Translations under genes and position numbers: made by a program
Shown: positions 1 to 44,300 of the stretch, piece by piece
Layout: each line of letters starts with the position of its first letter
Position numbering within the stretch: the stretch's first letter is position 1
Assembly (NCBI GenBank): GCA_000708835.1
Contig: DF236985.1
Location: 1 to 64,000 of the forward strand
Length of the DNA stretch: 64,000 bases
From: Klebsormidium nitens
Taxonomy: Eukaryota; Plantae; Klebsormidiophyceae
Direction of reading: 5' to 3'
The notes under the pieces: model-generated
Databases searched by the model: none
Told to the model about the DNA's origin: nothing
What the model saw: only the letters and a program-made list of their open reading frames with translations

Positions 1-27
1 AGTCTGAGTCTGCAGCGCGAAGTGTCA

Positions 28-27899: not shown

Positions 27900-30800
27900 T
27901 TAGGACCCTGCCTTTTCTGCTCGTTTTGCCTCGTCGACTCTCTCAAAGTGCTCGTGGACCTGCGAAAAGTGCACAGCCGGAGGTAAAGAAACTTTGCTGC
28001 TAAATCTGGTCGGATGCAGGAAATGCATCAAGCTCTTTCAGGTATCCATGGAGCATACAAGGATGTGTACTTGCGTTCTAGAGCTACAGACGAAGAGAAG
28101 AAGCCCCATCATCTCGACGCCTATCTCGAGCTCTTCCAAGGACAATGCATCAACAAGAGAGACTGACGTGAGCGAACCTGTCTCTTGCGGATTTGAGAGT
28201 CATTGCGAAGAGGATTCCCAACACTGCAAGGGCAATCTTTGGCAGCAAACTCCGGTACGTACCTCCACGAGCGACCGGAACCGAGGGGTGCCGGATGGGC
28301 CCACGTAGTAGTAGTCAATCTTTCCTGAAAAGTTGAAGAAACGAGATCTAGCGGAAGTCATTCGTTGCCATGTTTTAGAAGGCGAGGGGGCAGTGCACGG
28401 AACGGAGGTTGGCAAATAGGATTCTGAAATTCGTCGAGCCTTCTTCTTCGGAAAGGACGCATGAAGCGTCAAGCCTCCGCATAGGCCTGGCTGCTTTGCA
28501 GTCCTCAAGTCACAAAGATATGAGCTACTTGTGCTTCTTTAAAGAAATCTACAGAAGAGGCCGTCAAACAAGCCGTCTTCGGGTACGTCCATAAGTGACC
28601 CTCTTCACCCTCGCAAGCTAGCGACGAAGCTAATGTGGCCCCAAGACTATCCAATTCATAAAATCATCAATACGCCGAGATAACGTTGATGTAAACGCAC
28701 TGGGACGGTTAGGGTTAGTATGGTGGTTGAGGTGGGTAGGGCTGCGGAGCAGGTATCTTTTGGGTCAAGGTTTTCGTAAGTTAGTCGGAGCTTATTGTTA
28801 TGTGGCTTACCCTTATGTTTCTTGAGTCTCATCCCAAAGCTGTCTTGAAACGTCTCGCTTTAATGCAAGGTTTTCGCAATCAAGAATCAAGAATGTCGCA
28901 CGCACTTGCGCAGGTCAAAGATCCGCTGGGGTTACCTGGACTGACGCCTCCCTCCCCCCGTTTCCTGGTATCCATTCTCCACCCCTCCCTCTCCAGGCGC
29001 GCGCGCACACATTCGGCCTCGGCTGGAGACACTTGCGGCCCGCGGCCGCCCGCGCGCGTGCTCAGCACCGCGGCCGCCTTTCCGCCTTCCCTATCGTCAA
29101 AGAACTGCTGGAGCTTGACCAGACTGTCTGTCTTGAACGTTTTCTTGAGCTGATTCGGTATTCGTACGTGTACTTCCGGTCCTCTCTTTTTCCGTCTTTC
29201 CGTTTCCGGTACTCGATCCGGACGCCTTCCGGCAGCTCGGACGCCTCGTACGCGCGCCACGCGTCCTTGAACCCCGCGGCCGACGCGCCGTACTGCGCGC
29301 ACAGCCGCTCGCAAAACCAGAGCACCTCGCGCGCGCGCCACGGCGTTCCCTTTCCGCTCGCTCCTTCCGTTCCGTTCAGTTCTTCTGGCGCCACATTGGA
29401 CTTCTTTATTTTGTATTCACCGAGTACTTTATTCGCAAAAGCGCCGCCGTGATGCTTGAATGAGGCTTCCTTTGTACCAGCCAGATGCTCCGTTTCCTTC
29501 GTTTCCGTTCCGTCCGCCGTCTCTTGCTTTTCCGTTGCCGGCGCCTCTGTGAAAATTTCACTGGGGCGAAGCGTCGTCTCCTCCTCTCGACCGTCATGAT
29601 ACCGCACTCTGTACGTCAGCCGGCGCGTCACTCTCTTGCCCCACAGAGGCCCCTCCAAAACCCTTCCCCGCACCAGCATAGGACACTCGTCTTCGTTCAG
29701 GACTTGTTTTTCAAACCAGCGCTCCAAAAGCTTCGTTTCGGGTCCTTGATTTCTATACGGTTCCGCAGGATTTGCATCCGCCGGAACGTCAGAAGATCCT
29801 TTACCCCCGGTGGCCTGACCCATACTGACTGGCCCCGTCTCTAACTCTTCTGCTTTGACCTTTGCTTCTTCTTTGCTGCTCTTCTCTGATCCGACATCCT
29901 CTAAGGGCTCCCCGGCACTCCGCTTGATCCGTTTCCGCCCGTCTCCGCCGCTCCGGTCTGAAGCGTCTCTTAAGAGTGCCGTGCGCTTCAGTCTCGTCAC
30001 AACAGCAGCGCGACCCCCCAGGGCTTTGCCGGGCCGTGGCTTTGCCACGGCCGCCACTCCCCCTGCTAAACCTCGGTCCGGCTGCTTCGCGCTCGCGGCC
30101 GCCGTCGCGCAGGGCACCGAATGCTGGCTGCCCGTTCTGATCGGCTGCTGACCCTCTTCCGCTCTGTGGTAGTCCGTGTCCGTTTTGCGCGGGGGTGAGG
30201 TTTTGGCTGGATTAAGCCGCCGTGATGGGCGGTTCAGGATCTGAGCGACCTGCTCCAGGTCTGACGTCTTGCTGACGTCGAGCGTCGGGCCAGCCCCGCC
30301 TGACCTGGAGCGCTGCCAGTATTGGGCGAGGGCCTGCAAACGATGAAAAAAATGTTTCCTGCTCACAAAACCTCAAGTCAAATTTGTACGATTTTATCGT
30401 GGCCGGATGAAAGATAAGAGTGAATCTTGTCAACTCTTCTGCCCACAAAAAGTGCTTTGAAAGGTCTCTGATAACAAAAGCGGCAGGCTTTTTGAAAGTA
30501 ATGGAATCTTTCTTCCATAGTCATGTCTTCACCTCGATAGTGCTGGTTTTGCGGAACGTATCTTTACAACCATTGGAGACTGGGGATCCAGTCTTAAGTG
30601 TACGTATGGAGCTTTGTTTCTCAAGATGCCGGAATCAAGTGAGAATCATCGAGAACAGAATGAGTATACGTAGCTCTTTCTGAGATCCTGAAAGCCACTC
30701 ACCTTAATTAGGAGCAGTATCTCCGAGTCTCTCCTCGACGGAAGCCCCATCTTCACGTCGTCTTTCGCAGACCGGCTCCCATCCTTCTGCGTCTTTCCCT

Positions 30801-33800
30801 TCTCCCCTTCTCTGAAGCACTTCTCCGCAAATCTCAGCCCTCCGTCGTCTGCGTCCCCGAAACATTCCTCTAACAGCCGCACATACGCCGTCAGTTCCTT
30901 TTCCTTCCGATCGATTCCCGCTTCCGTGCACGCTCGCCTCAGCTCCGCCATTCGCTCCTTCAGTGAACCTCGAAACCGCGCGCGCGTTAGAGCCGCGAGG
31001 AGCGCGCGCGTCTCGCCCGCCGTCCACTGTATGTCTTCCGACTCTTGGGCGACTTCGTCGTCTGGCTCGGCCGCTAGCTTTTCCTCGGTTTGAAGCACCT
31101 CGCCAAACCTCTCGTGCAGGGTTTGCGCACGCGCGAGCGAGAGCGCGAGCGCGGCGAGGCGGCCGCGGTCTAGAAGCGCGGACAGCTCCGTAACGAAATC
31201 CGTCCGCAAGAGCTGCTTGCAGTCGTTCCGGACGAAGGAAAGCGCTTGTGTGTAGCGGGACGAGATACCCTCAATCATCTGCGCAGATCAAGCTGAGAGA
31301 AGTTCCGTTTGAGTCCCTTCTCCAAAGACTTAACGGTAAGTGCACGCCGTCAGGGGGGGCTGCCAACGAGTATATCGTGCGCCGAACGCATCACGGTTCC
31401 TTTAGAGAAAGGCAGTTGCTTAGAAGTCGTACATGATTGATTTTCTGGTAAATTACCTGGAAACTTGGCAAATAGAGACGAGTTCCACTCACAGCTTTCA
31501 GAAGAAGGTGTAAGCAGGACATCCGCGGACGTCGCGACGCCAGAAGAACCATAAGAGAGTTTGGCGAAGCCGTTTGCATAGAAGATTGTGCTTTTTTCCC
31601 CGTTTGACAAGATAGCACTAGAAGGAATGCGATAATAGGCACGATAATGAAGCACTGTGAAGCAACTTCTTAAACATGAAAGCGGTGAAAAATAAAATAC
31701 AAAGAGCCGGTCACCCCACCTTCCGCACGAAAATCTCAGCTAGCTTGGGGCACGCCGTCTCGACGACCATCAGCTTCGACTTCTGGCCGCTGGCGGGGCG
31801 ACCCCACTTGGCCTGCTTGCCACGTGTCAGCCTCACGCAGAGCCGCGCGGTCTCGACGCCGATCTCTTGCTCGGCGCCGTGTTTGATCACCTCGAAGACG
31901 CGCATCGCGGCCAGGCTGTCGAGGTGGCGGGAGACGATCCGGTCGAAGTTGAGGCGGATCAGCTGGACGGAACGGAAAGGGATCTCGTTTGAAACGGTAT
32001 CAGGCCCATTACAGCATTGCGTCAGGAGGCGAGACTTTTCACGCTTCCAAGCAGATGCTTTTTGAATGACACGAGATGTTAGAACTGTTGTTCAGGAGCC
32101 TCAGAAAGTGAGCTGAGGTGATTTTCCTGCTGATAAATTTTTGCGAACGCCTCTCGGGGACAAGAAAGTATCTCACGGCTCGACCGCCCCCAAACTGATT
32201 GGAGCACCACTTTCAGTATCTGAAAGTGCGCTCCCAACGTCTGACCGCGCGCGCACCTCCGTCAGCAGCTCGCACCCGCCGCGCTCCACCGCGTGGCCCA
32301 GGTCGCTCAGCGCCGCCGAAGCCGCGGCCGCGAGCGCGCCCACAAACCCCTCCAGTAACCCCGGGAGCTTGCCGCCGGTCCGCCGCGCGCGCGCGGCCCC
32401 GCGGTCGCAAGCGATCCCCAATGCCGCGTAGAGCTTTTCCACTGGGTACAGTAGAAGAGGCCGGATCATGACGTCTTGAAGATGGGTGCTCTCCCATTCC
32501 ATGTGGTTCAGAAGGGCGGGGACTGGGCCCCTGTCGAGTGCCGCCCGGAGGCCTCCGGTGAAGAGCGACGGCGGAACCCGTTCCGGCTGGTCGGAGCGGA
32601 ATTCGACCAGCCGGGCGAGCTGCAATGAGTATCACGAGCAGAGGTTTGTTCTCGTTATGTTTTAAAGTCTGATACCTTCAAAATCTTTTGCTGGTTTTGA
32701 TGTGTGATACAAATAGTCAGAGGTTTTGAAATTGCTGATCGAAGAGACACAACTATCCTCCAAAGTGACCAGGGGGCGTTCTGCTTGACTCTACACGGTC
32801 GTTGACAATGCTTCCTTTGAAGTCCTACTTGCAAACGATGAAAATACGCGAAGTCCCACAACAAGAGGTGTCTGGCAACGGATTTGAGCTCTTAGGAAAG
32901 TTAATATCATTCCACAGCAAAGCCTCCAACATGATCATGAAAGCAGTTTTCTAACCGAGCGCGCTTTCGCACCTCTTTTCCGCATCGGAGCGCCGTACAA
33001 CCCTCCGCATCCGGCTGCAATTCTCGTCTGGTGTCTCCGGCCACCTCCACTGAAAGGTCCGCCACCATCTTAGGCAGCTTGAGCTTTCTGGGCGCGCTCG
33101 CGCGCGCGAGCGCGGCCCGGAACTCCCCCTGCTTCTTGGGAAGGAAGACCGCGCGCGCAAGCTTGAAAGTTCCCGCGCCCATGTCCTGATGGGCGCGGAG
33201 AAGCTCCTGCGCGCCCGACAGGATCGCGCGCAATGCGCAGCTCCGCGCGGCGGCGCTGCTGCTGCGCAGAAATTTGCGGAGCTGCGGCATGTGGGAGTCG
33301 GCTTCGGAGATGGGCTGCATAGAATAGAATTGAACATTAGAAAACTTGCGACAGTGCATAAGCATGCGATGAAAAATGTAGGAATTACCTACTGTAGAAC
33401 AGTCGTACTTCAAGAAAGGGCGTTACTAAAGGCACAGAGGAACTTTGCAGACTGCATTAGGGCGTCGAAAGTGTCGAATTGTGCAACATATAACAAGTCT
33501 CTGACGTCCTCGCCAACTAGCAGGAATGTGTCTGCTACTTAACTTATTTCTGTACGCAAGAGATATCTTGGATTCATAGACTGGCTAAAAAAAACGTCAT
33601 CAATCAAAATCAAAAGTTTACTTCACACTGGCCTTCGAGCTCGAGGGTAACCAGCCGCAAGTGGAGCTCTACTTTCTCTTTCTGACCCCCTGGTCCTGGC
33701 CCACAATCAGCACACTCAGCAGCACTTCGATGAATTCTAAGTATATAAAAAGGGTTCCCTCACAGCGGGTCACTCACCAGATACTCGATCGGCACAGATC

Positions 33801-36800
33801 TGGGGTGATACAACAAGCGCGGGTAGATGACCATAAACTCGACTGGGGCGACAATCTCCTGGGCTCTTCGCTCCGCGGCGCGCCGGGGCAGGTTCTCCCG
33901 GGCGATCGTGAGGTTCTCGAGCGCGGCCGCGACCGCGTCCCGCCGCGCGTCGGCCCAGTCGGCCTCCGCTTGCTGGAGAATCCTTCGCTCGGTGGGGTTA
34001 TTGTGATGGTGCCTGGTAGATGGAGCCAAATGTTCAAAACGCTTTTTTGAGTCACAATACGGCACAACAAACCCCAAGAGCGTTCTGACAGAAAGCCGAC
34101 CCAGTCAGAGATGGGCCAGCTGCAAAGTGCACTTTCTCGTGCATGAGTAAGAGCAGAGGCGACTGAATCGGAGATGTAAACAGGTATTCAAGTCAGCGCA
34201 GAGTCTTCTCAGAAGTGCTCTCTTTTGAGTAATAGACGGCAGATCAATCCTTGATTTGGAGGCCTTGTTCTATCAAAGTAAACGAAAGTGGTCAATCCAA
34301 GAAAAGCATTCTATCCGTACCCTGGAACCAGAGCCGTGCTGTGAACTCCAGACGTATCTTCGCCCCACCAAAGATCTCCCGCGCAAATGACGGCGACCGG
34401 CTTCTGCCGGAAAGCCCCGTGCGCGTCGCCCTCCCCTTGGCGGCACAAAAGGAGCGTCTCGGCGAGGCGGCGGATGGCAGCCTGATGGAAACAACTGACT
34501 TGATGTTCGTCTGTGTCGATTTACGGATAAGGGTTATTTGGAGGAAAAAGAACCAATTCGCGAATTTTACAGGCAAAAGAGGACAAAAGAGGCAAAAGAG
34601 GTTGAAAATGATTCCAGGCAACTGCAGATTCAAGAGGACAACGCGCAAGATTCAGAAAACTACAGCTTTAGAGAAGAGGCGGCTTGGAACAAACGTTTGG
34701 CATTCACCTGTTGATCCTTCCGAGGGTCCATTGTGACCAGAACTTTCTGGGCGGCTTTCATCTCCTGCAGCAAAGTTGCACCATATTTCATCGATTCTAC
34801 GGGCTAACGTGCCTCGAAGTGGTCTGAAGATGCTGAGGTCCACCCCCTGAAACGGGCTTTCTAAGAAGCGTTTCAATTTCAACAAAAGGAAATTTGGTCT
34901 TAAAGTCCAATCCAAAATCATTCTACAACACATGGGACACAGCTACAATCGAAGGGATATCTACCGTACAGACCTCCGGCTTCTTCTTCTGAAACGAAGC
35001 AAAAGTGAAAACCCCACAGGGCAACAAGGTGCGCGCAAAATATCTGAATTTTCTCGAAAATCCCTAGGCACGATTAGCTGGCGCAGATCATGCTGCTCAC
35101 CGCTAGTGCGTCGATGCCGAACGGCCCGGCGTCGTCCGACACGCCCGGCAGGTCCACGAAGTCGTGAAATTGCACCGCTATGTGGGGCATCTCGAAAACC
35201 GCCTTGTAGACCAGAGGCCAGTGAGGCTGCGATGTAGGGAGGGTAAGGTGTTCTACATTTAGGTTTTGCGGAGAGACTCTGAGATGTACTTTCTGTGACG
35301 AAGGAGAGCTGAGATTCTGAACTTCAGGGCCTAACAGGGTGGATTTGAGCTGACGGTCATGAGGAAGATCTGGAGGCTCAAAGACTGTTTCAGCAGTGTA
35401 AGAGTGTAAAAGGACGAAGTACAGAAGTTTGGTCGGTAGATACCAAAATGTCCCCGGGCCCCGTCTGCTACTTTAGGTGAACAGTGGAAAAGGAAAGAAC
35501 AGAACATCTTTGGTTATGATTTGCCGCTTTCGCATAGGCTCCCGCAGTGGCTTGGCAAAGACCTCTTCGGGCCGGTTGATCAAGATTTACGCGCTGGCTC
35601 ATTCACGGGGCCGATCTGATCATCCTTGAAGCTTGCATGCGCGCCTGCGTTAGAGCAGAGGCGCCCAAAAATTGCGAACTAGACGTGCTGCCTTTGCTCT
35701 CCCTTTATCTTGATTGCTACCAGATCTAGAGGGGTCCTCGATATGTGGCATTCGACCGCGCACGATGAACCTCACCTCGTTCCGCGCCCGCCCGTCTCGC
35801 GTGTAGCATCCCATTATCCGCAGAGTAGAAAAGTCTCGGCACAGGCAAATGTGCTCTTCCAGGGTCGTGTCGGGTGACGTGGTGCGGCATGGCGCAAACA
35901 CCTCCACCTGCGAAATTCGATTTCACCCCTGAAACTTGATGATTCACCGAAAGCAGTACTGTGCATTCCTTATGTCAAATCAATCGCACGTTCGTGAGAA
36001 GAGCCCAGCACGAAGTTCTATAACTCTGCACGGAGCTGTGAGAACACCCAAAGCTCAATTAGTTTTACTTGTGATCGCATTTTACCGGACCGGCAAACAT
36101 TACTCGCTGACGTAATCAGTGGGCTTCGATGCTGGTGCACTCTGGCATCAACTCTTCACAAAGCAAGATCTAGGATGAGTGCACGAGAAAATAGTGCGTT
36201 TCGTGGACACAAGCGACCTCTGGATTTCACCACAATCCGACGGGTCCATTCCGTTCCGTTCCGTTCACACGCCCCACCTTTCCGGCGGAGCTCATCCGCG
36301 CGCGGCAGCGCTCCGGCAGCTTGAAGTCGCCGTCGACCAGCTCGCAGATGGGGGTGTTAACAGGCTTCCCGAGCAGTGCCAGCGCCGTCTGAATAAACGG
36401 CTCCCGCAGAATCTCCGCGTCTTCGTCCGCATTCACACCGCCATCGCTTTCGTAACCTTCCCCCAGGTCTAGTCCGTCGAGAAGCGCACTCTTCTTTGGA
36501 GGTCCAACTAAGGAAGTGACTCCACCAGGGGCAGTTTTGGTCTCTCTCCACAGTTGCCAGAGTCTGCAAGAAGAGGAAAGACCAAGAAGGGGGTCTAAAA
36601 CTTGCCCCTGCTGTAATAACTTCGGGATTCGAGGAATGCTTCCTGTCGAACCACATTCTGTGGGTGGGTTGAGAAACTTCGCTTTTTCTAGTATTTTCAT
36701 CACCGGTAACAAGTTTGGCTGCAAACACTGTCCGCCTGATTAGCTTTTTGAACAGTCCTGCTGCTCTCATCCAGCTCTAGAGAGACGAAGGCGAATCTGT

Positions 36801-39800
36801 GTCGTGACCGAGCATTCCTCGTCAGTAGTGACAATTCTCACATCAGTTGACCCAAATTGTTGCCGAAGAGAAGTAGAGATTCATAAAAATCTTGAGTTGA
36901 GTTTTGTAATCTTTTGAACGATCGAGTTTGAGTGCGGAAGTCAGAGCAATCTGTGATTGATTGCAACCTTCAAGGCTTTTGTCCTTCATCAGAGCCCACA
37001 ACTTCCATACGAGATTCTTGTCAAGGAGTAATCCCAACCTTTGTAGTGGTTCCGCCACATTTTCTAAAGTCTTGTAATAGATGCGCACGCGCGCGAGCGA
37101 GCCCGCCGTGATCGCGCACTTCACTTGGGTGGTGTCCGAAACGCCCCCTTCGGGCAGCAGGTAATAGTCCCGCATGTCCGGTTCCGGTTCCGATCGCCCC
37201 TGGAAGTCGCGGAGGTATTTTCAGTCTTTAGAGCTTTTCACACAGTGGGAGATTCAAAGGCAGGCGGCGAAGTTTGTGGATGAGCGCTGTCGCCGACCGA
37301 AAGCACACTTGGTCTCACGGATGGATCGTGCATGGAACTCGACAGAACTTACTGTACACAAATAACTGAAGCTGAGAATCTTTGAAAGTTTCTAAGCAAC
37401 CCGCCGGACCAAACCTTTCTTCCTCAAGAGCACAGGATATCTGAGGTAATAACAGGGTCTGTAGATATTCAGCTATAGGCGAAGATTCTGAAACCAACCA
37501 GTCTGAACAACCCAGCAAGTCTTTTCTGGGCACGGAAAACAATTTGCCAAACGTGAGCGGTCTGCTACAGATCAACAAGTTGGTGGGGACTGCTTCGATA
37601 ATCTCTGAGAATTTGTCGATTTGATTTAGATCCCAGTATCTCCTTCATCCATCAAAAACGTATGCGCTCTGAAACAGTCTGTACTCACGTTCCCAAAGCG
37701 CAGGTTCCAAACCCGTCGAGCCCAAAACGCGGTCTCGTTATCGTCTTCGGAAACCTCGCAGTCTCGGAGCGACAGGTTCGCGGTCGGTTCGTCGTCATTG
37801 GAGAACAGGATCTGTTTGAAAAGGGGAAAGCTCGTATCAATCATCCATTACCGAGGATTTAAAATGTCACCCAGGAAAGATCGAAGCTGGCAGTCCGTCG
37901 TTGCGACTTGGACAGCCAAATGGTCTCCCTTCTCAAAATGGGTACACGTGCGAACCAATGTGGAGACTTCAGATCAACCTGTCTGATAACTTTACGAACA
38001 TACACCAGGAAGGGTGCTCTGCATTGCGACCCGATCAATATTAGAAGGTCCTGTCACTTCAACAGATTTAGTGCTCTTTCACCCGTCAATGAAAACGAAT
38101 GTTGCGTGTATCAATAGAAGCGGTGTTGACTTTGGAAGCTTAGCCCGGCCAAAAAGAAGGGGCATGCTATGACATTTACATAAGATTTCGTCTCGACTAC
38201 CACACAGTTCAGCCGTTCATACGGGCTTCATTCATATAGATGAGACCAACTTCATTAACCTCAGCCGAGTCTCTTCTCAGCACTTTCTTTCGAACGACTT
38301 TTCCTCACCTTGTGCTTCGTGCCGCTCTCGTTGACACCAACCACTTCGCCTTCACGCCACGTGTCCGCTTCTGGAAAGTACACCTCGACGCGGTCGCCCG
38401 CGCGCGCGCTCGCCACAATGTCGCGCCGCGGCACCTCGTGCGGCTCTGCGTCGACGAGCGTGACCTCCTCCCTCTCGCCGATCTGCGCGACCTTCTCGCG
38501 CACGCGCGCGTGGTACGCGCGTGCGTCCGGCTCGGATGCTTGAAGGATGTCGTTGATCTGCGCGAGGTGGGACCTTTATTTCCAAAACGATTCTTTAATC
38601 TCAGAATTCACCGACAATACTCTGACAATTTTATATTTATTGCTGAAGCCAGTGTCGACTAGCCCATGAAGCAAGAATCCTTGGGCTTTTGAGGCAAACG
38701 TTCTAGGGAGACTCTCTTGAATCTCTTGAGAGTTTTAGTAGGGCCGTCGAGAGGAGAACCCTGAGTCGGAGGTTTTGTTAGGGTGTGTTCACGTATCCGA
38801 GCAACTGACTATGTTGTGGGAACATGGCGGAATCCTAACTTGAAAGAAAATGGGACTGCGATTCAAGAAGACGACGAAGGATGGCTCCTCTCTGAAGGCT
38901 CGGGTCACAGTTGTGCGGCAGACATTGAAGATCTTATCATGTGAAAAGTCATTTCGAACGGGAAGTCTATTTCATTAATATCAATTGGTTCATTTCGTCC
39001 AGTATGTTTCGAACTCCGCAGAAAGCCACTGAAATTGGCCACCGAAATTGGCACTCAACTCATAGGCAGGTAGATGATGGCATCCCTGATTTGGAACGGC
39101 TGTCACTATCTGTAAAATCGGATGACCTTCAAACGCAAAGATTCTCCTTTGTTTCTGCAAATAGCACAGATCGGACGCGACGAAGCACAAATCGTCTACA
39201 AAAGCCAAAAAAGAACGAGACAGAGAGAACCAAATCTTTTCTACCTTTGATGTTTACTCACTACAACTTATACCGTTACAATTAACCCGTGAGGAAAGAA
39301 TGGATCGCCCACCAGCCGCGTCTTCCCGGTGCCGCTCCTCCCGACCAGGACCACCCGGTCCTTCAAGGCGGCAGCTCTCTCCGTTAGCTCAACCATATGA
39401 TCATATAGGCCCCGTACCCCTCCCCGGGACAAACGGTCGCTGGTCGGGGTGCCAAGCCTGGTGGCAAAGACAAGAGTTAATAGTCGGAATTGCTCCTTGA
39501 GTGTGAATTTGGATCATGCTCACCGCCTAAAAGCTTGAGTTGGCAACTGGGAGTCGAGAATACGAAATGGAAGTTTTTCTTGCTGGCGCCTTGACTAACC
39601 AGCACTGTCCGCTGGGCCTAATGTGTGTACCAATGAGGGGTTGTAATCTGTGGATACTTACAGGCCCTGGAACATCGTCTTTCCTTTCTACATGCCTGAC
39701 AGAGCCCCATAACTTTATCCCGTCTGCTGGACTTTAGAGCAACTGCTGTAAGCCCGCCAGACTTGTTCTCCCTCGCCCAGCCCTTTCCTGACGAGAACTC

Positions 39801-40289
39801 TTACTCTGCTGCCGGCCAATGATTGACCCGGAGCATCGTTCGACCATTCATCTGTCACGCAGAACATGCAAACCCGCAGGACGAGTCTCTGCATTGCGCT
39901 AAATAGGCCAAGTTACCAAAAGTCAGCAATGAAGCAAATAGGCCAAGTCAGTTAAAGTTAGCCTGCCTTATGGGAAAGGAAGGAGCAGTGAGGAAGTTTG
40001 CGGCGGGCACATTTGCAATGATGGTCAAATGGTTTGGGCCCAAACTTTTAAGTGCTGTTTTCGTTCCAATCAATACCTTGAGCTTTCTCTGCCTCATGCA
40101 AAAAAGATATACTCGCAGACTCGCATTCCCTCACCTCCCTGGGCTTTCCGCTGCCCGGTGGAGCAGTTCGCAGGCGTCCGCCTCTTGGCACATCAGCTGA
40201 TTCAGTCCTTCCTCCTCGGACGGAGAAGAAAGGTCCCACGGGTGCTCATCCTCTGGCGTCGATTCTTCGATCTCAAAGTCCACGTCCAT
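27900..40289 (-). CDS. Dynamin-superfamily (SLIP-GC/NUGGC-like) GTPase with an inserted Tudor/Agenet domain and two C-terminal MBD-like domains; ~15+ exons; one apparent frameshift at ~29157
   Basis: ATG at 40289. Phase-consistent splicing gives G1 VVLVGRSGTGKTRL|INDIL, a Tudor-like GDRVEVYFPEADTWREGEVVGVNESGTKHK|ILFSNDD, G2-like YLLPEGGVSDTT, and G3 WPLVYKAVFEMP..FVDLPGVSD (35226-35101). C-terminal exons (28936 donor, 28324-28263, 27959-27900) give EGWRMDTRKRGEGGVSPGKIDYYYVGPSGTPRFRSLVEVHEHF. Middle exons are only partly resolved. Confidence 0.7.
28648..28832. mobile_element. Second copy (~185 bp) of the MITE family seen at 13573-13759, in an intron
   Basis: Same core (tagggttagtatggtggtt..gctgcggagcaggtatcttt) and right end tttcttgagtctcat; decayed 8-bp TSD cccaagac / cccaaagc. 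Confidence 0.75.
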
Positions 40290-41390: not shown

Positions 41391-44300
41391 TTAGTAGCTG
41401 GCTGCTACTGGCACCCCCCTTACCCCGACCATCGCCGGTCCCCTCGCCATCTGCAGCTCTTGCTCCTGCGACTGGATGACGTCACCCGGGACGTCACCTA
41501 CCGGGCGCTCTCTTCCCGCCATTTGGCCCCCGGTAACCCCTCCCCCGACCTGCTGCTCCCGCTGGGCGCTCTGGCTGCTGACGTCATTCGGGTCGCCGAC
41601 GACTTGCGCCACCTTGACGGAGATCGGTTCGGCCGTGAGCCGCGCCCCGACCAGAAACAGGGCCTCCTCCAGGTGCGTCGCGAGCTCCTCCTCGGTGGCA
41701 TAAGCGCCCGGGGAAGCCTCCCGGTCACCGATGATAGTGTCGTAAACCTTGTCCATCTGGAGATGGAAGAAAGATCATCGGCGCCTTGTTTGTTTTGACT
41801 GTTTTACGCAAGATAAGGAGGGATGACTGCGGTGAAAAGGTTGTCCTCTCGGTCTTATGCAAGAGCGGTTTGTAGATGAAGAGGGCGGTGAATTACTGAT
41901 GGTGTCGTACACCTTGTCCATCTGGGCAGGCGAAAGAAATTCTCAATCAGCGCTTCGTGCGCTCTTTCGATGCGCAAGAAAAGAGAAATCGACTGCGGGG
42001 CGGATCTTGTCGTCGCAAATATTAAGGCTAATGTGTAAAGTAGAAGAGTGAAGGTATTACAAACGGTTACGTCCTACCACATAGACCATTTTCCAAATTT
42101 CAACTATGGAAGGGTGGTAGTGCTAAAGCCCTTACGAAGATGGCCAATTATTTGGTTTAAAAACCCGTCTGATAAGTAAGAAAAGCCACTTATTAGACTG
42201 GTGATGCTTCCGCTTCAGCGCTTTCAGGCAATATGACCGTCCACAAATGAATACCAACGGCACACCGGGGGCCTGGAGCCTCCAAAGTCAGACCCTGAAG
42301 GCTTCTTTCACAGCTTTTCTGCTTCCTTACTTCACAAGGGTAGCAAGTAGTGGGTAGTACCCGGTACTAGAGACCCTTTGCTCAATCATTCACGCCAAGC
42401 GGCGGAAGCCATCCCGCGCGCTATCCAAGGGGTTCCCTGTAGGGCAACTTTCGCAGCTTCGTTTCGACAAGGATAGAACAATGCATACTTACACGGTAAC
42501 TTTCCACACCTTACCTTTTCGTTTGCGCCCAGCGGAGGAAGCCCGGCCATTCCACGACGCTATCAAAGGGGTCACCTTCAAAGCAATTTTTGCAGCTTAT
42601 CTGCTTCGTTCGACCAGAATTGAACGATGCATAGTTAAACTTTTTACCCCTTACCTTTTTGCTTGCGCCAAGCGGCGGCAGCCCTGCCATCCTCGCGACG
42701 CGATCCAAGGGGTTGTGTTCAGGGCAACTGTCGCAGCTCATCTGCGTCCTTCGACCAGGATTGAACGACTCAAAGTTTCAGGGTGATTTGCCATCCCTCA
42801 CCTTTTCGTTTGCGCCAAGCGGCGGCAGCCCGGCCAATCCCGCAACGCGATCAAAGGGGTTGCCTTCAGGGCCAGCATTGGAATCTATCTGCTTCGTTTC
42901 GACAAAAACGGAACAATGCAAAGGTCCACGCTAATCTTCCACCTCTTACCTTTTCGTTTGCGCCTAGCGGCGGCAGCCCGGCCAACCCCGCGATGCGGTC
43001 GAAGGCGGTCCAAAAGTCAGAGTGCGGCACCTTGCCGTTCTGAGAGTGCTCCTCAAAGATCTGGTGGACGGCTCGAGAGAAGCCTTCCTTGTCGCCCATG
43101 AGCGGCTTTATCTTCTCGCCCTTTACGTCCTGCGGGAAAAAGGACAGGGGATGTAAACTGAGCACTGACGTGCACTTTTGTAGCTTTGTGCAAAGGAGAA
43201 GAAGCCGTTGGACGTTTGGGCAGAATAGAGGCTTTATACAAATGATCCTTCGTCTGTTCACTCAGGGACTTTAGGTCCAAGCTCTGAAGAGGAGAAGCCA
43301 TTGAGCAGACTCTGAGGAGAATGTATCAGGATATGGTCCGAACTTTACGGCACGCTTTGACAACCGAAATATGTAAGCCCCAATTTCTCGGTGCGGGCGT
43401 CAGTCACGGGCAACTAGGGAAGACGATTGATTCCGAAAACACAACCCCTTCTCTTCTCTGCCTCGAGCGACCGAAGAAGCTTCATCGGCAGTTTTCTAGT
43501 CGCCAAGAAGGAGGTTCATCCTCCGACGCCCTCGTTAACGGCGTAACCCAACCTTGACGAGAATTCTGCACAGCGCATGAATCTTGCCCGAGCTTGACCC
43601 GACTTGCAAAACCTTCTCGATGTGCGCAACGGTTACCAATCTCCGACGCCCTCGTCAGCAGCGTAAACCCACCTTAACCTGAATCTGCGCCCGTGATTAG
43701 CCCAGGCTTAACCAAATTGGCAAACCGTACCTTCTCGGTGTGCGCGACGGTCACGGGGGCCGTTTGCAGCCCCTCGGCGAGCCGCTCGAGCGCCGCCCGC
43801 AAGTGGTCGGTAAATTCGTCCTTGGACAGGCGCTGCCCATTCTGCTGCTCCCCGGCCACGCTCTGGATCGCTCGGTCGATCAGCGCTTCGACCTGCGTTG
43901 CGAGACCGGAATGAGAGCGTGTCAAACGGAACGAATGGACCAGAACAGAAGGAAAAGGTGGAACAGGCACTGCCCATTCTGCTGCTCCCCTGCCACGCTG
44001 TGAATCGCCCGTCCGATCAGCGCCTCGACCTATAGTGGCAAGACCGGAATCAGAGCGTGTCAACGGAATGTAGCGGAATAGAACGGAATGTAGCGGAACG
44101 GAAGGGAAAGGTGAAACGGGAGCTGCCCCTTCTGCTGCTCCCTGGCCACGCTCTGGATCGCCCGGTCGACCAGCGCTTCGACCTGTGTTGCGAGACCGAA
44201 ATATGAACGTTTCAATGGAACAAATGGGAGCGGAACGGAGCAGGAATAGGCGCTGCCCTTTCGACCTGCAGTACGAGACCGGAACGCGAGCATGACAATC

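Follow-up and report, generated by a model that had tools for sequence, protein, structure and literature searches.

A transcribed Klebsormidium nitens gene from a small family that appears to combine a P-loop NTPase with Tudor-like and methyl-CpG-binding domains

The first 64,000 nucleotides of contig DF236985.1 from Klebsormidium nitens (GenBank assembly GCA_000708835.1, positions 1 to 64,000), here called the window, are eukaryotic DNA of ~50% GC with introns present. The segment running from 40289 to 27900 on the minus strand is, on balance, probably best explained as one transcribed gene of 17 exons that belongs to a small multigene family. The family protein, of ~1,550 residues by a rough sum, would open with a short acidic start and a P-loop nucleoside triphosphatase (NTPase) recognised by its GxxGxGKT, LLPEGxVSDTT and DLPG motifs, with a weakly supported Tudor-like barrel (~100 residues) set into it after the P-loop helix and before switch I. 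Behind the NTPase come a middle region in which Ala, Leu, Arg and Glu abound and which may contain a SANT/Myb-like unit, then a disordered linker and a second Tudor-like barrel; at the C-terminal end a divergent MBD-like domain precedes a canonical methyl-CpG-binding domain (MBD). The sequence-only reading of this DNA had described a dynamin/SLIP-GC-like GTPase fused in one gene to Tudor/SH3-like and two MBD-like units. Its observation is partly confirmed and its interpretation partly supported. The evidence that carries the picture is the structure of the gene, its transcription, its conservation in related loci and the identity of the last MBD.

Motifs were located by a motif scan and by stop-to-stop translation of the minus strand, which recovered every element that had been listed: G1 (GRSGTGKT at 39342), a G2-like motif (LLPEGGVSDTT at ~37150), G3 (WPLV..FVDLPG at 35220-35143, with DLPG at 35154), the second Tudor-like stretch (LTYRVRYHDGREEETTL at ~29620, with RYHDG at 29604) and two MBD-like units. 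All 17 exons could be rebuilt on this strand with uniformly GT..AG introns (Table 1), exons 1-6 being delimited by splice signals and reading frames. Read from the ATG at 40289, the 15 joined exons form one continuous open frame, 1,497 codons long, that stops at 29062-29064; every donor is GT and every acceptor AG. The end of exon 17 coincides with position 27900, where the sequence-only reading had placed the end of the locus.

Transcription is documented by four public runs mapped to 29300-35299, in which ten of ten contigs match the assembly with 0-1 differences. Spliced contigs back seven introns (34765-35100, 34482-34707, 34013-34320, 33315-33777, 31963-32256, 31279-31719 and 30334-30702). 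Six of the contig joints have CT..AC ends, equivalent to GT..AG on the minus strand, and the seventh intron comes from a loose end mapping to 34322; once ambiguous intron cuts were adjusted, all seven RNA-supported introns were canonical. The chain of spliced contigs links the DLPG exon to the exon carrying the second Tudor-like barrel and the first MBD-like unit, within which contigs cover 29300-30036 and 30199-30332. Its sole gap is 33132-32316, where intron 32620-32972 was placed by frame and conservation. The remaining junctions rest on colinear exon conservation in two related loci, L002 and L003. The claim of one gene therefore stands on the multi-exon structure, the seven RNA-supported introns and an architecture kept in relatives; the claim of one uninterrupted frame does not, since the frame breaks in the first MBD-like unit, a feature that the sequence-only reading had not noted.

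Relatives of the gene are few. With the large, 436-residue exon as query, HMMER picked out only five of 1.84 billion representative proteins (P0001-P0005), all of them open reading frame fragments on unannotated contigs; no annotated relative was among them. A word-index protein search with the same exon found only P0001 and with the frame-break region nothing, a word-index search with the family profile found only P0003 and P0005, and two metagenome-contig scans gave no match. The closest relative, L001, is a genomic contig of sample SRR23617307 with ~75% nucleotide identity that has exons 14 to 16. Exons 2 to 15 (both parts) are colinear, with equal exon boundaries, in L002a (complete), in L003 (from exon 4, a start set by the extent of flank examined) and in L004 (from exon 10). 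In L002 each exon from G1 to the C-terminal MBD recurs in the same order and on the same strand. Because the exon order is colinear in L002, L003, L004 and L001, the fusion is a trait of the family. The ratio of nonsynonymous to synonymous substitution rates (dN/dS) is 0.14-0.19 in the exons of the NTPase core and 0.3-0.4 in the remaining exons from 3 to 13. At least three family copies occur in SRR23617307, including a tail-to-tail pair, and Klebsormidium-type green algae are so far the only organisms in which the family has been seen. Public gene sets seem either to lack the locus and its paralogues or to model them wrongly, which points to a gap in the gene models of Klebsormidium. The tail-to-tail pair (L002:689-12214 and L002:21412-15058) lies on a 39-kb contig; exon 10 is shortened in its second copy, L002b, whose first MBD-like unit is interrupted by an additional intron.

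The C-terminal MBD is split over three exons, reading EGWRMDTRKRGEGGVSPG, then KIDYYYVGPSGTPRFRSLVE, then VHEHFERV and on to the stop at 27900. The sequence-only reading had called it close to canonical, and this was borne out. A 19-column profile of exon 16 built from five loci had 24 matches in the PDB, all of them MBDs, with the MBD2 protein best (E 8e-5) and MBD4, MBD3, MBD1 and MeCP2 following in that order. The Pfam MBD model (PF01429) scores exon 16 alone at E 0.004 and 17.2 bits, under its 21-bit cut-off because only about half of the domain lies on this exon. The D, YY and FRS residues are invariant in the five loci and align to the MBD2 protein KSDVYYFSPSGKKFRS, GW and RKR are present in the exon that carries the first half of the domain, and with the last exon all of the GW, RKR, D-YY, FRS and VE..HFE positions are accounted for. 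From profile and key residues the domain is judged a genuine MBD, and a preference for methyl-CpG is predicted.

At the other end of the protein, the N-terminus is a conserved P-loop NTPase with motifs of GTPase type. Invariant or nearly so across loci are G1 (VVLVGRSGTGKTRL followed, across the exon boundary, by INDIL), LLPEGxVSDTTQVKCEIT, HDFVDLPG and YVLVTMDA-RKDQQAAIRRLAE. Both the G1 pattern GxxxxGK[ST] and the G3 pattern DxxG are found, as GRSGTGKT and DLPG, invariant across loci. The exons of the middle region that follows, rich in Ala, Leu, Arg and Glu, are likewise conserved.

The units between these two ends are assigned with less certainty. The first MBD-like unit lies at ~29240-29080 on the minus strand. 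Pfam gave no match over it in the intact orthologues P0001-P0005, and in two family profiles MeCP2 ranked first or second, at E 0.09-0.5 (E ~0.1 where it came top). An AF2 model from a six-row alignment has pLDDT 60-81 over the unit. VIA, run with this model against 48,161 chains, ranks AtMBD6 first among the structural matches (Z 4.7, root-mean-square deviation 1.9 Å, 45/48 residues), in a list that also holds MBD4 (Z 4.0), MeCP2 and MBD2 and in which unrelated folds come within one Z unit; Foldseek returned MeCP2 with probability 0.75 and E 0.4. The sequence-only call of a first MBD-like unit is therefore weakly supported: on three weak but concordant tests it is probably a divergent MBD. 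For the second Tudor-like stretch, the profile places the Tudor domains of KDM4A/B/C on top at E 0.07-0.3, the Pfam PTM/DIR17 Tudor model matches P0004 at E 0.08, and the AF2 model has a four-strand pattern at pLDDT <50; its Trp is, by eye, not conserved across paralogues. The Tudor/SH3-like barrel that had been claimed here is weakly supported. The structure models cover the C-terminal module; an earlier AF2 model of P0001 from three alignment rows (pLDDT 38) was too poor for use, and a PDB sequence search with P0001 gave no match.

Weaker still is the support for the other putative barrel, which is shared between exons 3 and 4 and which follows the P-loop helix and precedes the LLPEG motif. 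Exon 3 matches the Pfam MORC2 chromo-like model at E 0.09, and Y, F, W, F and D stand, judged by eye from sequence, at plausible aromatic-cage positions. Kelch matches of the same exon among PDB profiles were rejected as spurious, as they stem from the short word VE.Y.PE.D.W. A Myb/SANT-like unit, not noted in the sequence-only reading, is possible in exon 14: this exon has the conserved pattern W..ETR.LL...RS..E...Y..LE, Pfam Myb_DNA-bind_4 matches the window copy at E 0.038 and L001 at E 0.13, and the PDB SANT domain 1x41 matches at E 0.59. This is a lead only.

Several observations weigh against one gene encoding one NTPase-reader protein. The read mapping covered 29300-35299, which leaves exons 1-6 outside the RNA evidence, and the runs are presumed to be RNA, the argument for this being their spliced, intron-less contigs. 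Both Tudor assignments are sub-significant, and the portion of the AF2 model that holds the second barrel is of low confidence. In the NTPase, a regular-expression search of the minus-strand frames of the locus found no [NT]K.D, the (N/T)KxD expected of G4, and the expected G4 strand carries an invariant VCAGD instead. The best scores of the P-loop exon, themselves weak, are to AAA-type ATPase models, and at exon level no profile or structural test connects this domain with dynamin or with another named family of GTPases. Some members of the family may be decaying or pseudogenes, as L004 has an in-frame stop in the conserved exon 12 (L004:1700-2080) and L003 a frame change within exon 14 (L003:8394-8977). 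Finally, the assembled copy in the window is itself frame-broken within its first MBD-like unit.

This last point bears on the strongest alternative, to which we give an even chance: that the window copy is a recently broken but still transcribed pseudogene, or a gene for a truncated protein lacking the canonical MBD, with the fusion present only in paralogues and relatives. The one-base break is a change from frame f1 to f0 at ~29155-29158, where a 10-nt gap relative to L001 shifts the conserved continuation KTFKTDSLVKLQQFF...EGWR... out of f1. The assembled open frame ends 31 codons past the break, leaving the second half of the first MBD-like unit and the whole of the C-terminal MBD out of frame, whereas in four of four relatives (L001, L002a, L003 and L004) both parts of the unit share one frame. 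There is no space for an intron: a short intron across the break was rejected, the only GT..AG option being 46 nt long, of the wrong phase and such that conserved residues would be removed. Elsewhere the RNA contigs differ from the assembly by 0-1 positions, so that the assembly looks accurate, and the defects in other family members point the same way. Against this, the sequence past the break is still constrained (dN/dS 0.33 downstream versus 0.48 upstream), and the splice sites and key residues of the C-terminal MBD are intact. A one-base assembly error is possible, since the mapping began at 29300 and the break lies outside the mapped reads. The downstream dN/dS and the intact splice sites argue that the break is either recent or an assembly error. 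Unless it is the latter, the assembled copy either encodes a protein that lacks the canonical MBD or has no functional product.

The second alternative concerns the nature of the N-terminal domain, which might belong to another class of P-loop ATPase (AAA/STAND-like) with the DLPG and switch-I resemblance being coincidental. All profile searches were made exon by exon, and exons of 19-95 residues give the dynamin tests low power. Within that scope, which for Pfam took in all stop-to-stop pieces as well as the exact exons, Dynamin_N had no match at E <=10, and the P-loop exon matched generic P-loop families (AAA_30 at E 0.003, AAA_16, RsgA_GTPase and Sigma54_activat). The NCBIfam search of the exons gave nothing useful, PDB profiles of the exons for switch I, G3 and the G4 region had no dynamin or other relevant match, and hidden Markov models of the exons scored E. 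coli RdcA/CrfC no better than shuffled sequences. The dynamin/SLIP-GC identity proposed from sequence was accordingly not demonstrated: every test gave generic P-loop matches or none, on short exons of low power, and G4 is non-canonical. Of the named domains, profile searching at exon level recovered MBD on a half-domain, left Tudor below significance and gave nothing for Dynamin_N. The lack of any dynamin signal, the ATPase models that lead the weak matches and the missing NKxD all favour an ATPase, as does GxxGTGKT, a form typical of ATPases; the conserved CAGDLWW was also counted on this side, as we take it to be loosely like the hhhhDD.W Walker B pattern. On the other side, DLPG does not vary among three loci and comes after a hydrophobic strand, as in G3, the invariant LLPEGxVSDTT between G1 and G3 is like switch I of dynamin-type GTPases (RdcA compared by eye), and a GTPase, RsgA_GTPase, is among the weak matches too. 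Membership of the dynamin/SLIP-GC group is unproven, and a different class of ATPase is a serious contender, although on this balance we think it quite unlikely.

Least likely of all is that a mobile element, or a selfish or defence gene cluster in rapid evolution, carries the family or gave rise to it, its readers serving to target or evade host methylation. In favour, the family is multi-copy (at least three in SRR23617307) with defects in several copies, the window also holds a Helentron at a distance of 8 kb, and K. nitens retrotransposons have captured DNMT3 (PMC5890265). Against this, the gene has 16 introns at conserved positions, purifying selection acts across all its parts, Pfam finds no transposase, integrase or reverse-transcriptase signal in it, and a search of 24-44 kb for flanking direct or inverted terminal repeats found none save an unrelated 145-bp tandem array.

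Table 1. Exons of the gene in the window, their content and the support for each
Feature	Position (strand)	Content	Support or conservation
Exon 1	40135..40289 (-)	ATG and acidic N-terminus	Open reading frame and GT donor
Exon 2	39313..39457 (-)	Walker A / G1, VVLVGRSGTGKTRL	77% identity in L002; Pfam gives generic P-loop matches
Exon 3	38309..38557 (-)	Post-P-loop helix (INDIL..) and first half of Tudor-like insert, GDRVEVYFPEADTWREGEVV	
Exon 4	37689..37811 (-)	Second half of Tudor-like insert, ILFSNDDEPTANLSLRD	
Exon 5	37039..37199 (-)	Switch-I-like motif, YYLLPEGGVSDTTQVKCAIT	29 invariant columns across 3 loci; no Pfam or PDB match
Exon 6	36278..36563 (-)	Variable acidic insert, then block EILREPF..ALLGKPVNTP	Block conserved
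Exon 7	35101..35226 (-)	G3 / Walker B, PHWPLV..HDFVDLPGVSDDAGPFG	Donor RNA-supported
Exon 8	34708..34764 (-)	EMKAAQKVLVTMDPRKDQQ	Both junctions within one spliced contig
Exon 9	34321..34481 (-)	VCAGDLWW..VHSTALVP at the expected place of G4	Conserved
Exon 10	33778..34012 (-)	Start of Ala/Leu/Arg/Glu-rich middle region, putatively helical in the sequence-only reading	
Exon 11	32973..33314 (-)		Acceptor RNA-supported; donor by frame and conservation of RCG.E/V
Exon 12	32257..32619 (-)		Donor RNA-supported; acceptor by conservation (Q/LARLV)
Exon 13	31720..31962 (-)		Both junctions RNA-supported
Exon 14	30703..31278 (-)	Helix-rich; possible Myb/SANT-like unit	Junctions RNA-supported
Exon 15, first part (f1)	29158..30333 (-)	Disordered linker, second Tudor-like barrel (~29536-29724), two helices, first half of first MBD-like unit, LPEGVRIEYRKRKDGKREDRKYTYEY	
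Exon 15, second part (f0)	28934..29155 (-)	Second half of first MBD-like unit, KTFKTDSLVKLQQFF, and first third of C-terminal MBD, EGWRMDTRKRGEGGVSPG	
Exon 16	28263..28324 (-)	Core of C-terminal MBD, KIDYYYVGPSGTPRFRSLVE	Kept in L001, L002a, L002b and L003
Exon 17	27900..27959 (-)	C-terminal helix of MBD, VHEHFERVD.., and stop codon	CAG acceptor; 8/10 residues kept in L001

Upstream of the gene, on the same strand and ~1.1 kb from exon 1, an open reading frame of 121 residues occupies 41391-41756 (minus strand) and may be either a gene of its own or another 5' exon. Beyond it, a tandem array at 42419-43005 consists of 3-4 copies of ~140-147 bp units that are 65-83% identical.

If the gene family does encode an NTPase joined to chromatin readers, a mechanism can be sketched. 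The MBD, possibly together with the Tudor-like barrels, would anchor the protein on methylated chromatin. Nucleotide binding and hydrolysis by the N-terminal motor may then drive dimerisation or assembly through the middle region, and the outcome could be compaction, clamping or remodelling of methylated chromatin. In this scheme the activity as a GTPase, an assembly like that of dynamin, the specificity for ligands and the role in the cell are all inferred, and so is the part in defence or silencing that the sequence-only reading had suggested. The methylome of K. nitens is plant-like: gene bodies and transposons carry methylated CG, and silent transposons carry methylated CHG and CHH (PMC5890265). 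Since the alga has CG, CHG and CHH methylation, an MBD protein has a substrate there.

A tentative extension, more doubtful than the gene structure itself, would make the family a new class of chromatin motor. In this proposal a GTPase-type P-loop with a built-in histone-mark reader would be recruited to 5-methylcytosine by its own MBDs, and nucleotide-driven assembly would silence or guard methylated DNA; the class would be confined to Klebsormidiophyceae and show birth-and-death evolution like that of an immune gene family. The usual partners of DNA-methylation readers are enzymes that modify histones or remodel chromatin. A GTPase-like P-loop motor with its own MBD and Tudor-like readers would, if real, represent a different route from the methyl mark to mechanical or assembly work. 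It would also offer a compact, testable protein for asking if its nucleotide state is coupled to its reading of marks. As K. nitens is a streptophyte alga with a methylome of the land-plant type, the family could reveal how silencing that depends on methylation was assembled before there were land plants.

The combination of NTPase, Tudor-like and MBD units was found nowhere else among annotated proteins or in the literature, where no paper was found that joins a P-loop NTPase to an MBD or describes this architecture; the sequence-only statement that no such protein had been described holds to that extent. Comparison with known systems is instructive for each of its parts. Like the MBD proteins (MeCP2, MBD1-4 and plant AtMBD5/6), the family protein has xxDxYYxxPxGxxFRS and a VE..HFE helix in its C-terminal domain, where the Asp, Tyr and Arg positions are retained, and a predicted MBD-like fold in the upstream unit. 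It differs in ending, at an estimated ~1,550 residues, in two MBD-type units while starting with a motor-like domain, and in the GV that replaces GW and the longer, variable loop of its first unit. We know of no MBD protein with a P-loop NTPase. With the dynamin superfamily (NUGGC/SLIP-GC and E. coli RdcA/CrfC, the latter compared by eye) it shares the order G1, LP.G....T, insertion, hhhhDxPG and hhhhxxDA plus helix, as well as a long non-GTPase region behind the NTPase domain. In contrast to that superfamily, its exons are without profile-level similarity, its G4 is CAGD and not (N/T)KxD, and a Tudor-like barrel appears to be inserted between G1 and switch I.

The nearest concepts are SETDB1, which combines Tudor and MBD units, and the reader-ATPases MORC and SMCHD1. 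The family protein likewise appears to have Tudor-like barrels and an MBD on a single chain, a hint that histone marks and DNA marks are read together. However, it has a P-loop NTPase where SETDB1 has a SET methyltransferase, no sequence relationship between the two was detected, and its own Tudor assignment is weak. MORC and SMCHD1 are GHKL ATPases of an unrelated fold, and the sole link to them in sequence is the weak match between exon 3 and the MORC2 chromo-like model of Pfam. The likeness lies in the concept of a nucleotide-driven, dimerising motor that carries readers of chromatin marks and acts in silencing. This is the analogy favoured for the family protein, which could be a functional analogue of MORC/SMCHD1-type reader-ATPases built on a GTPase-like P-loop.

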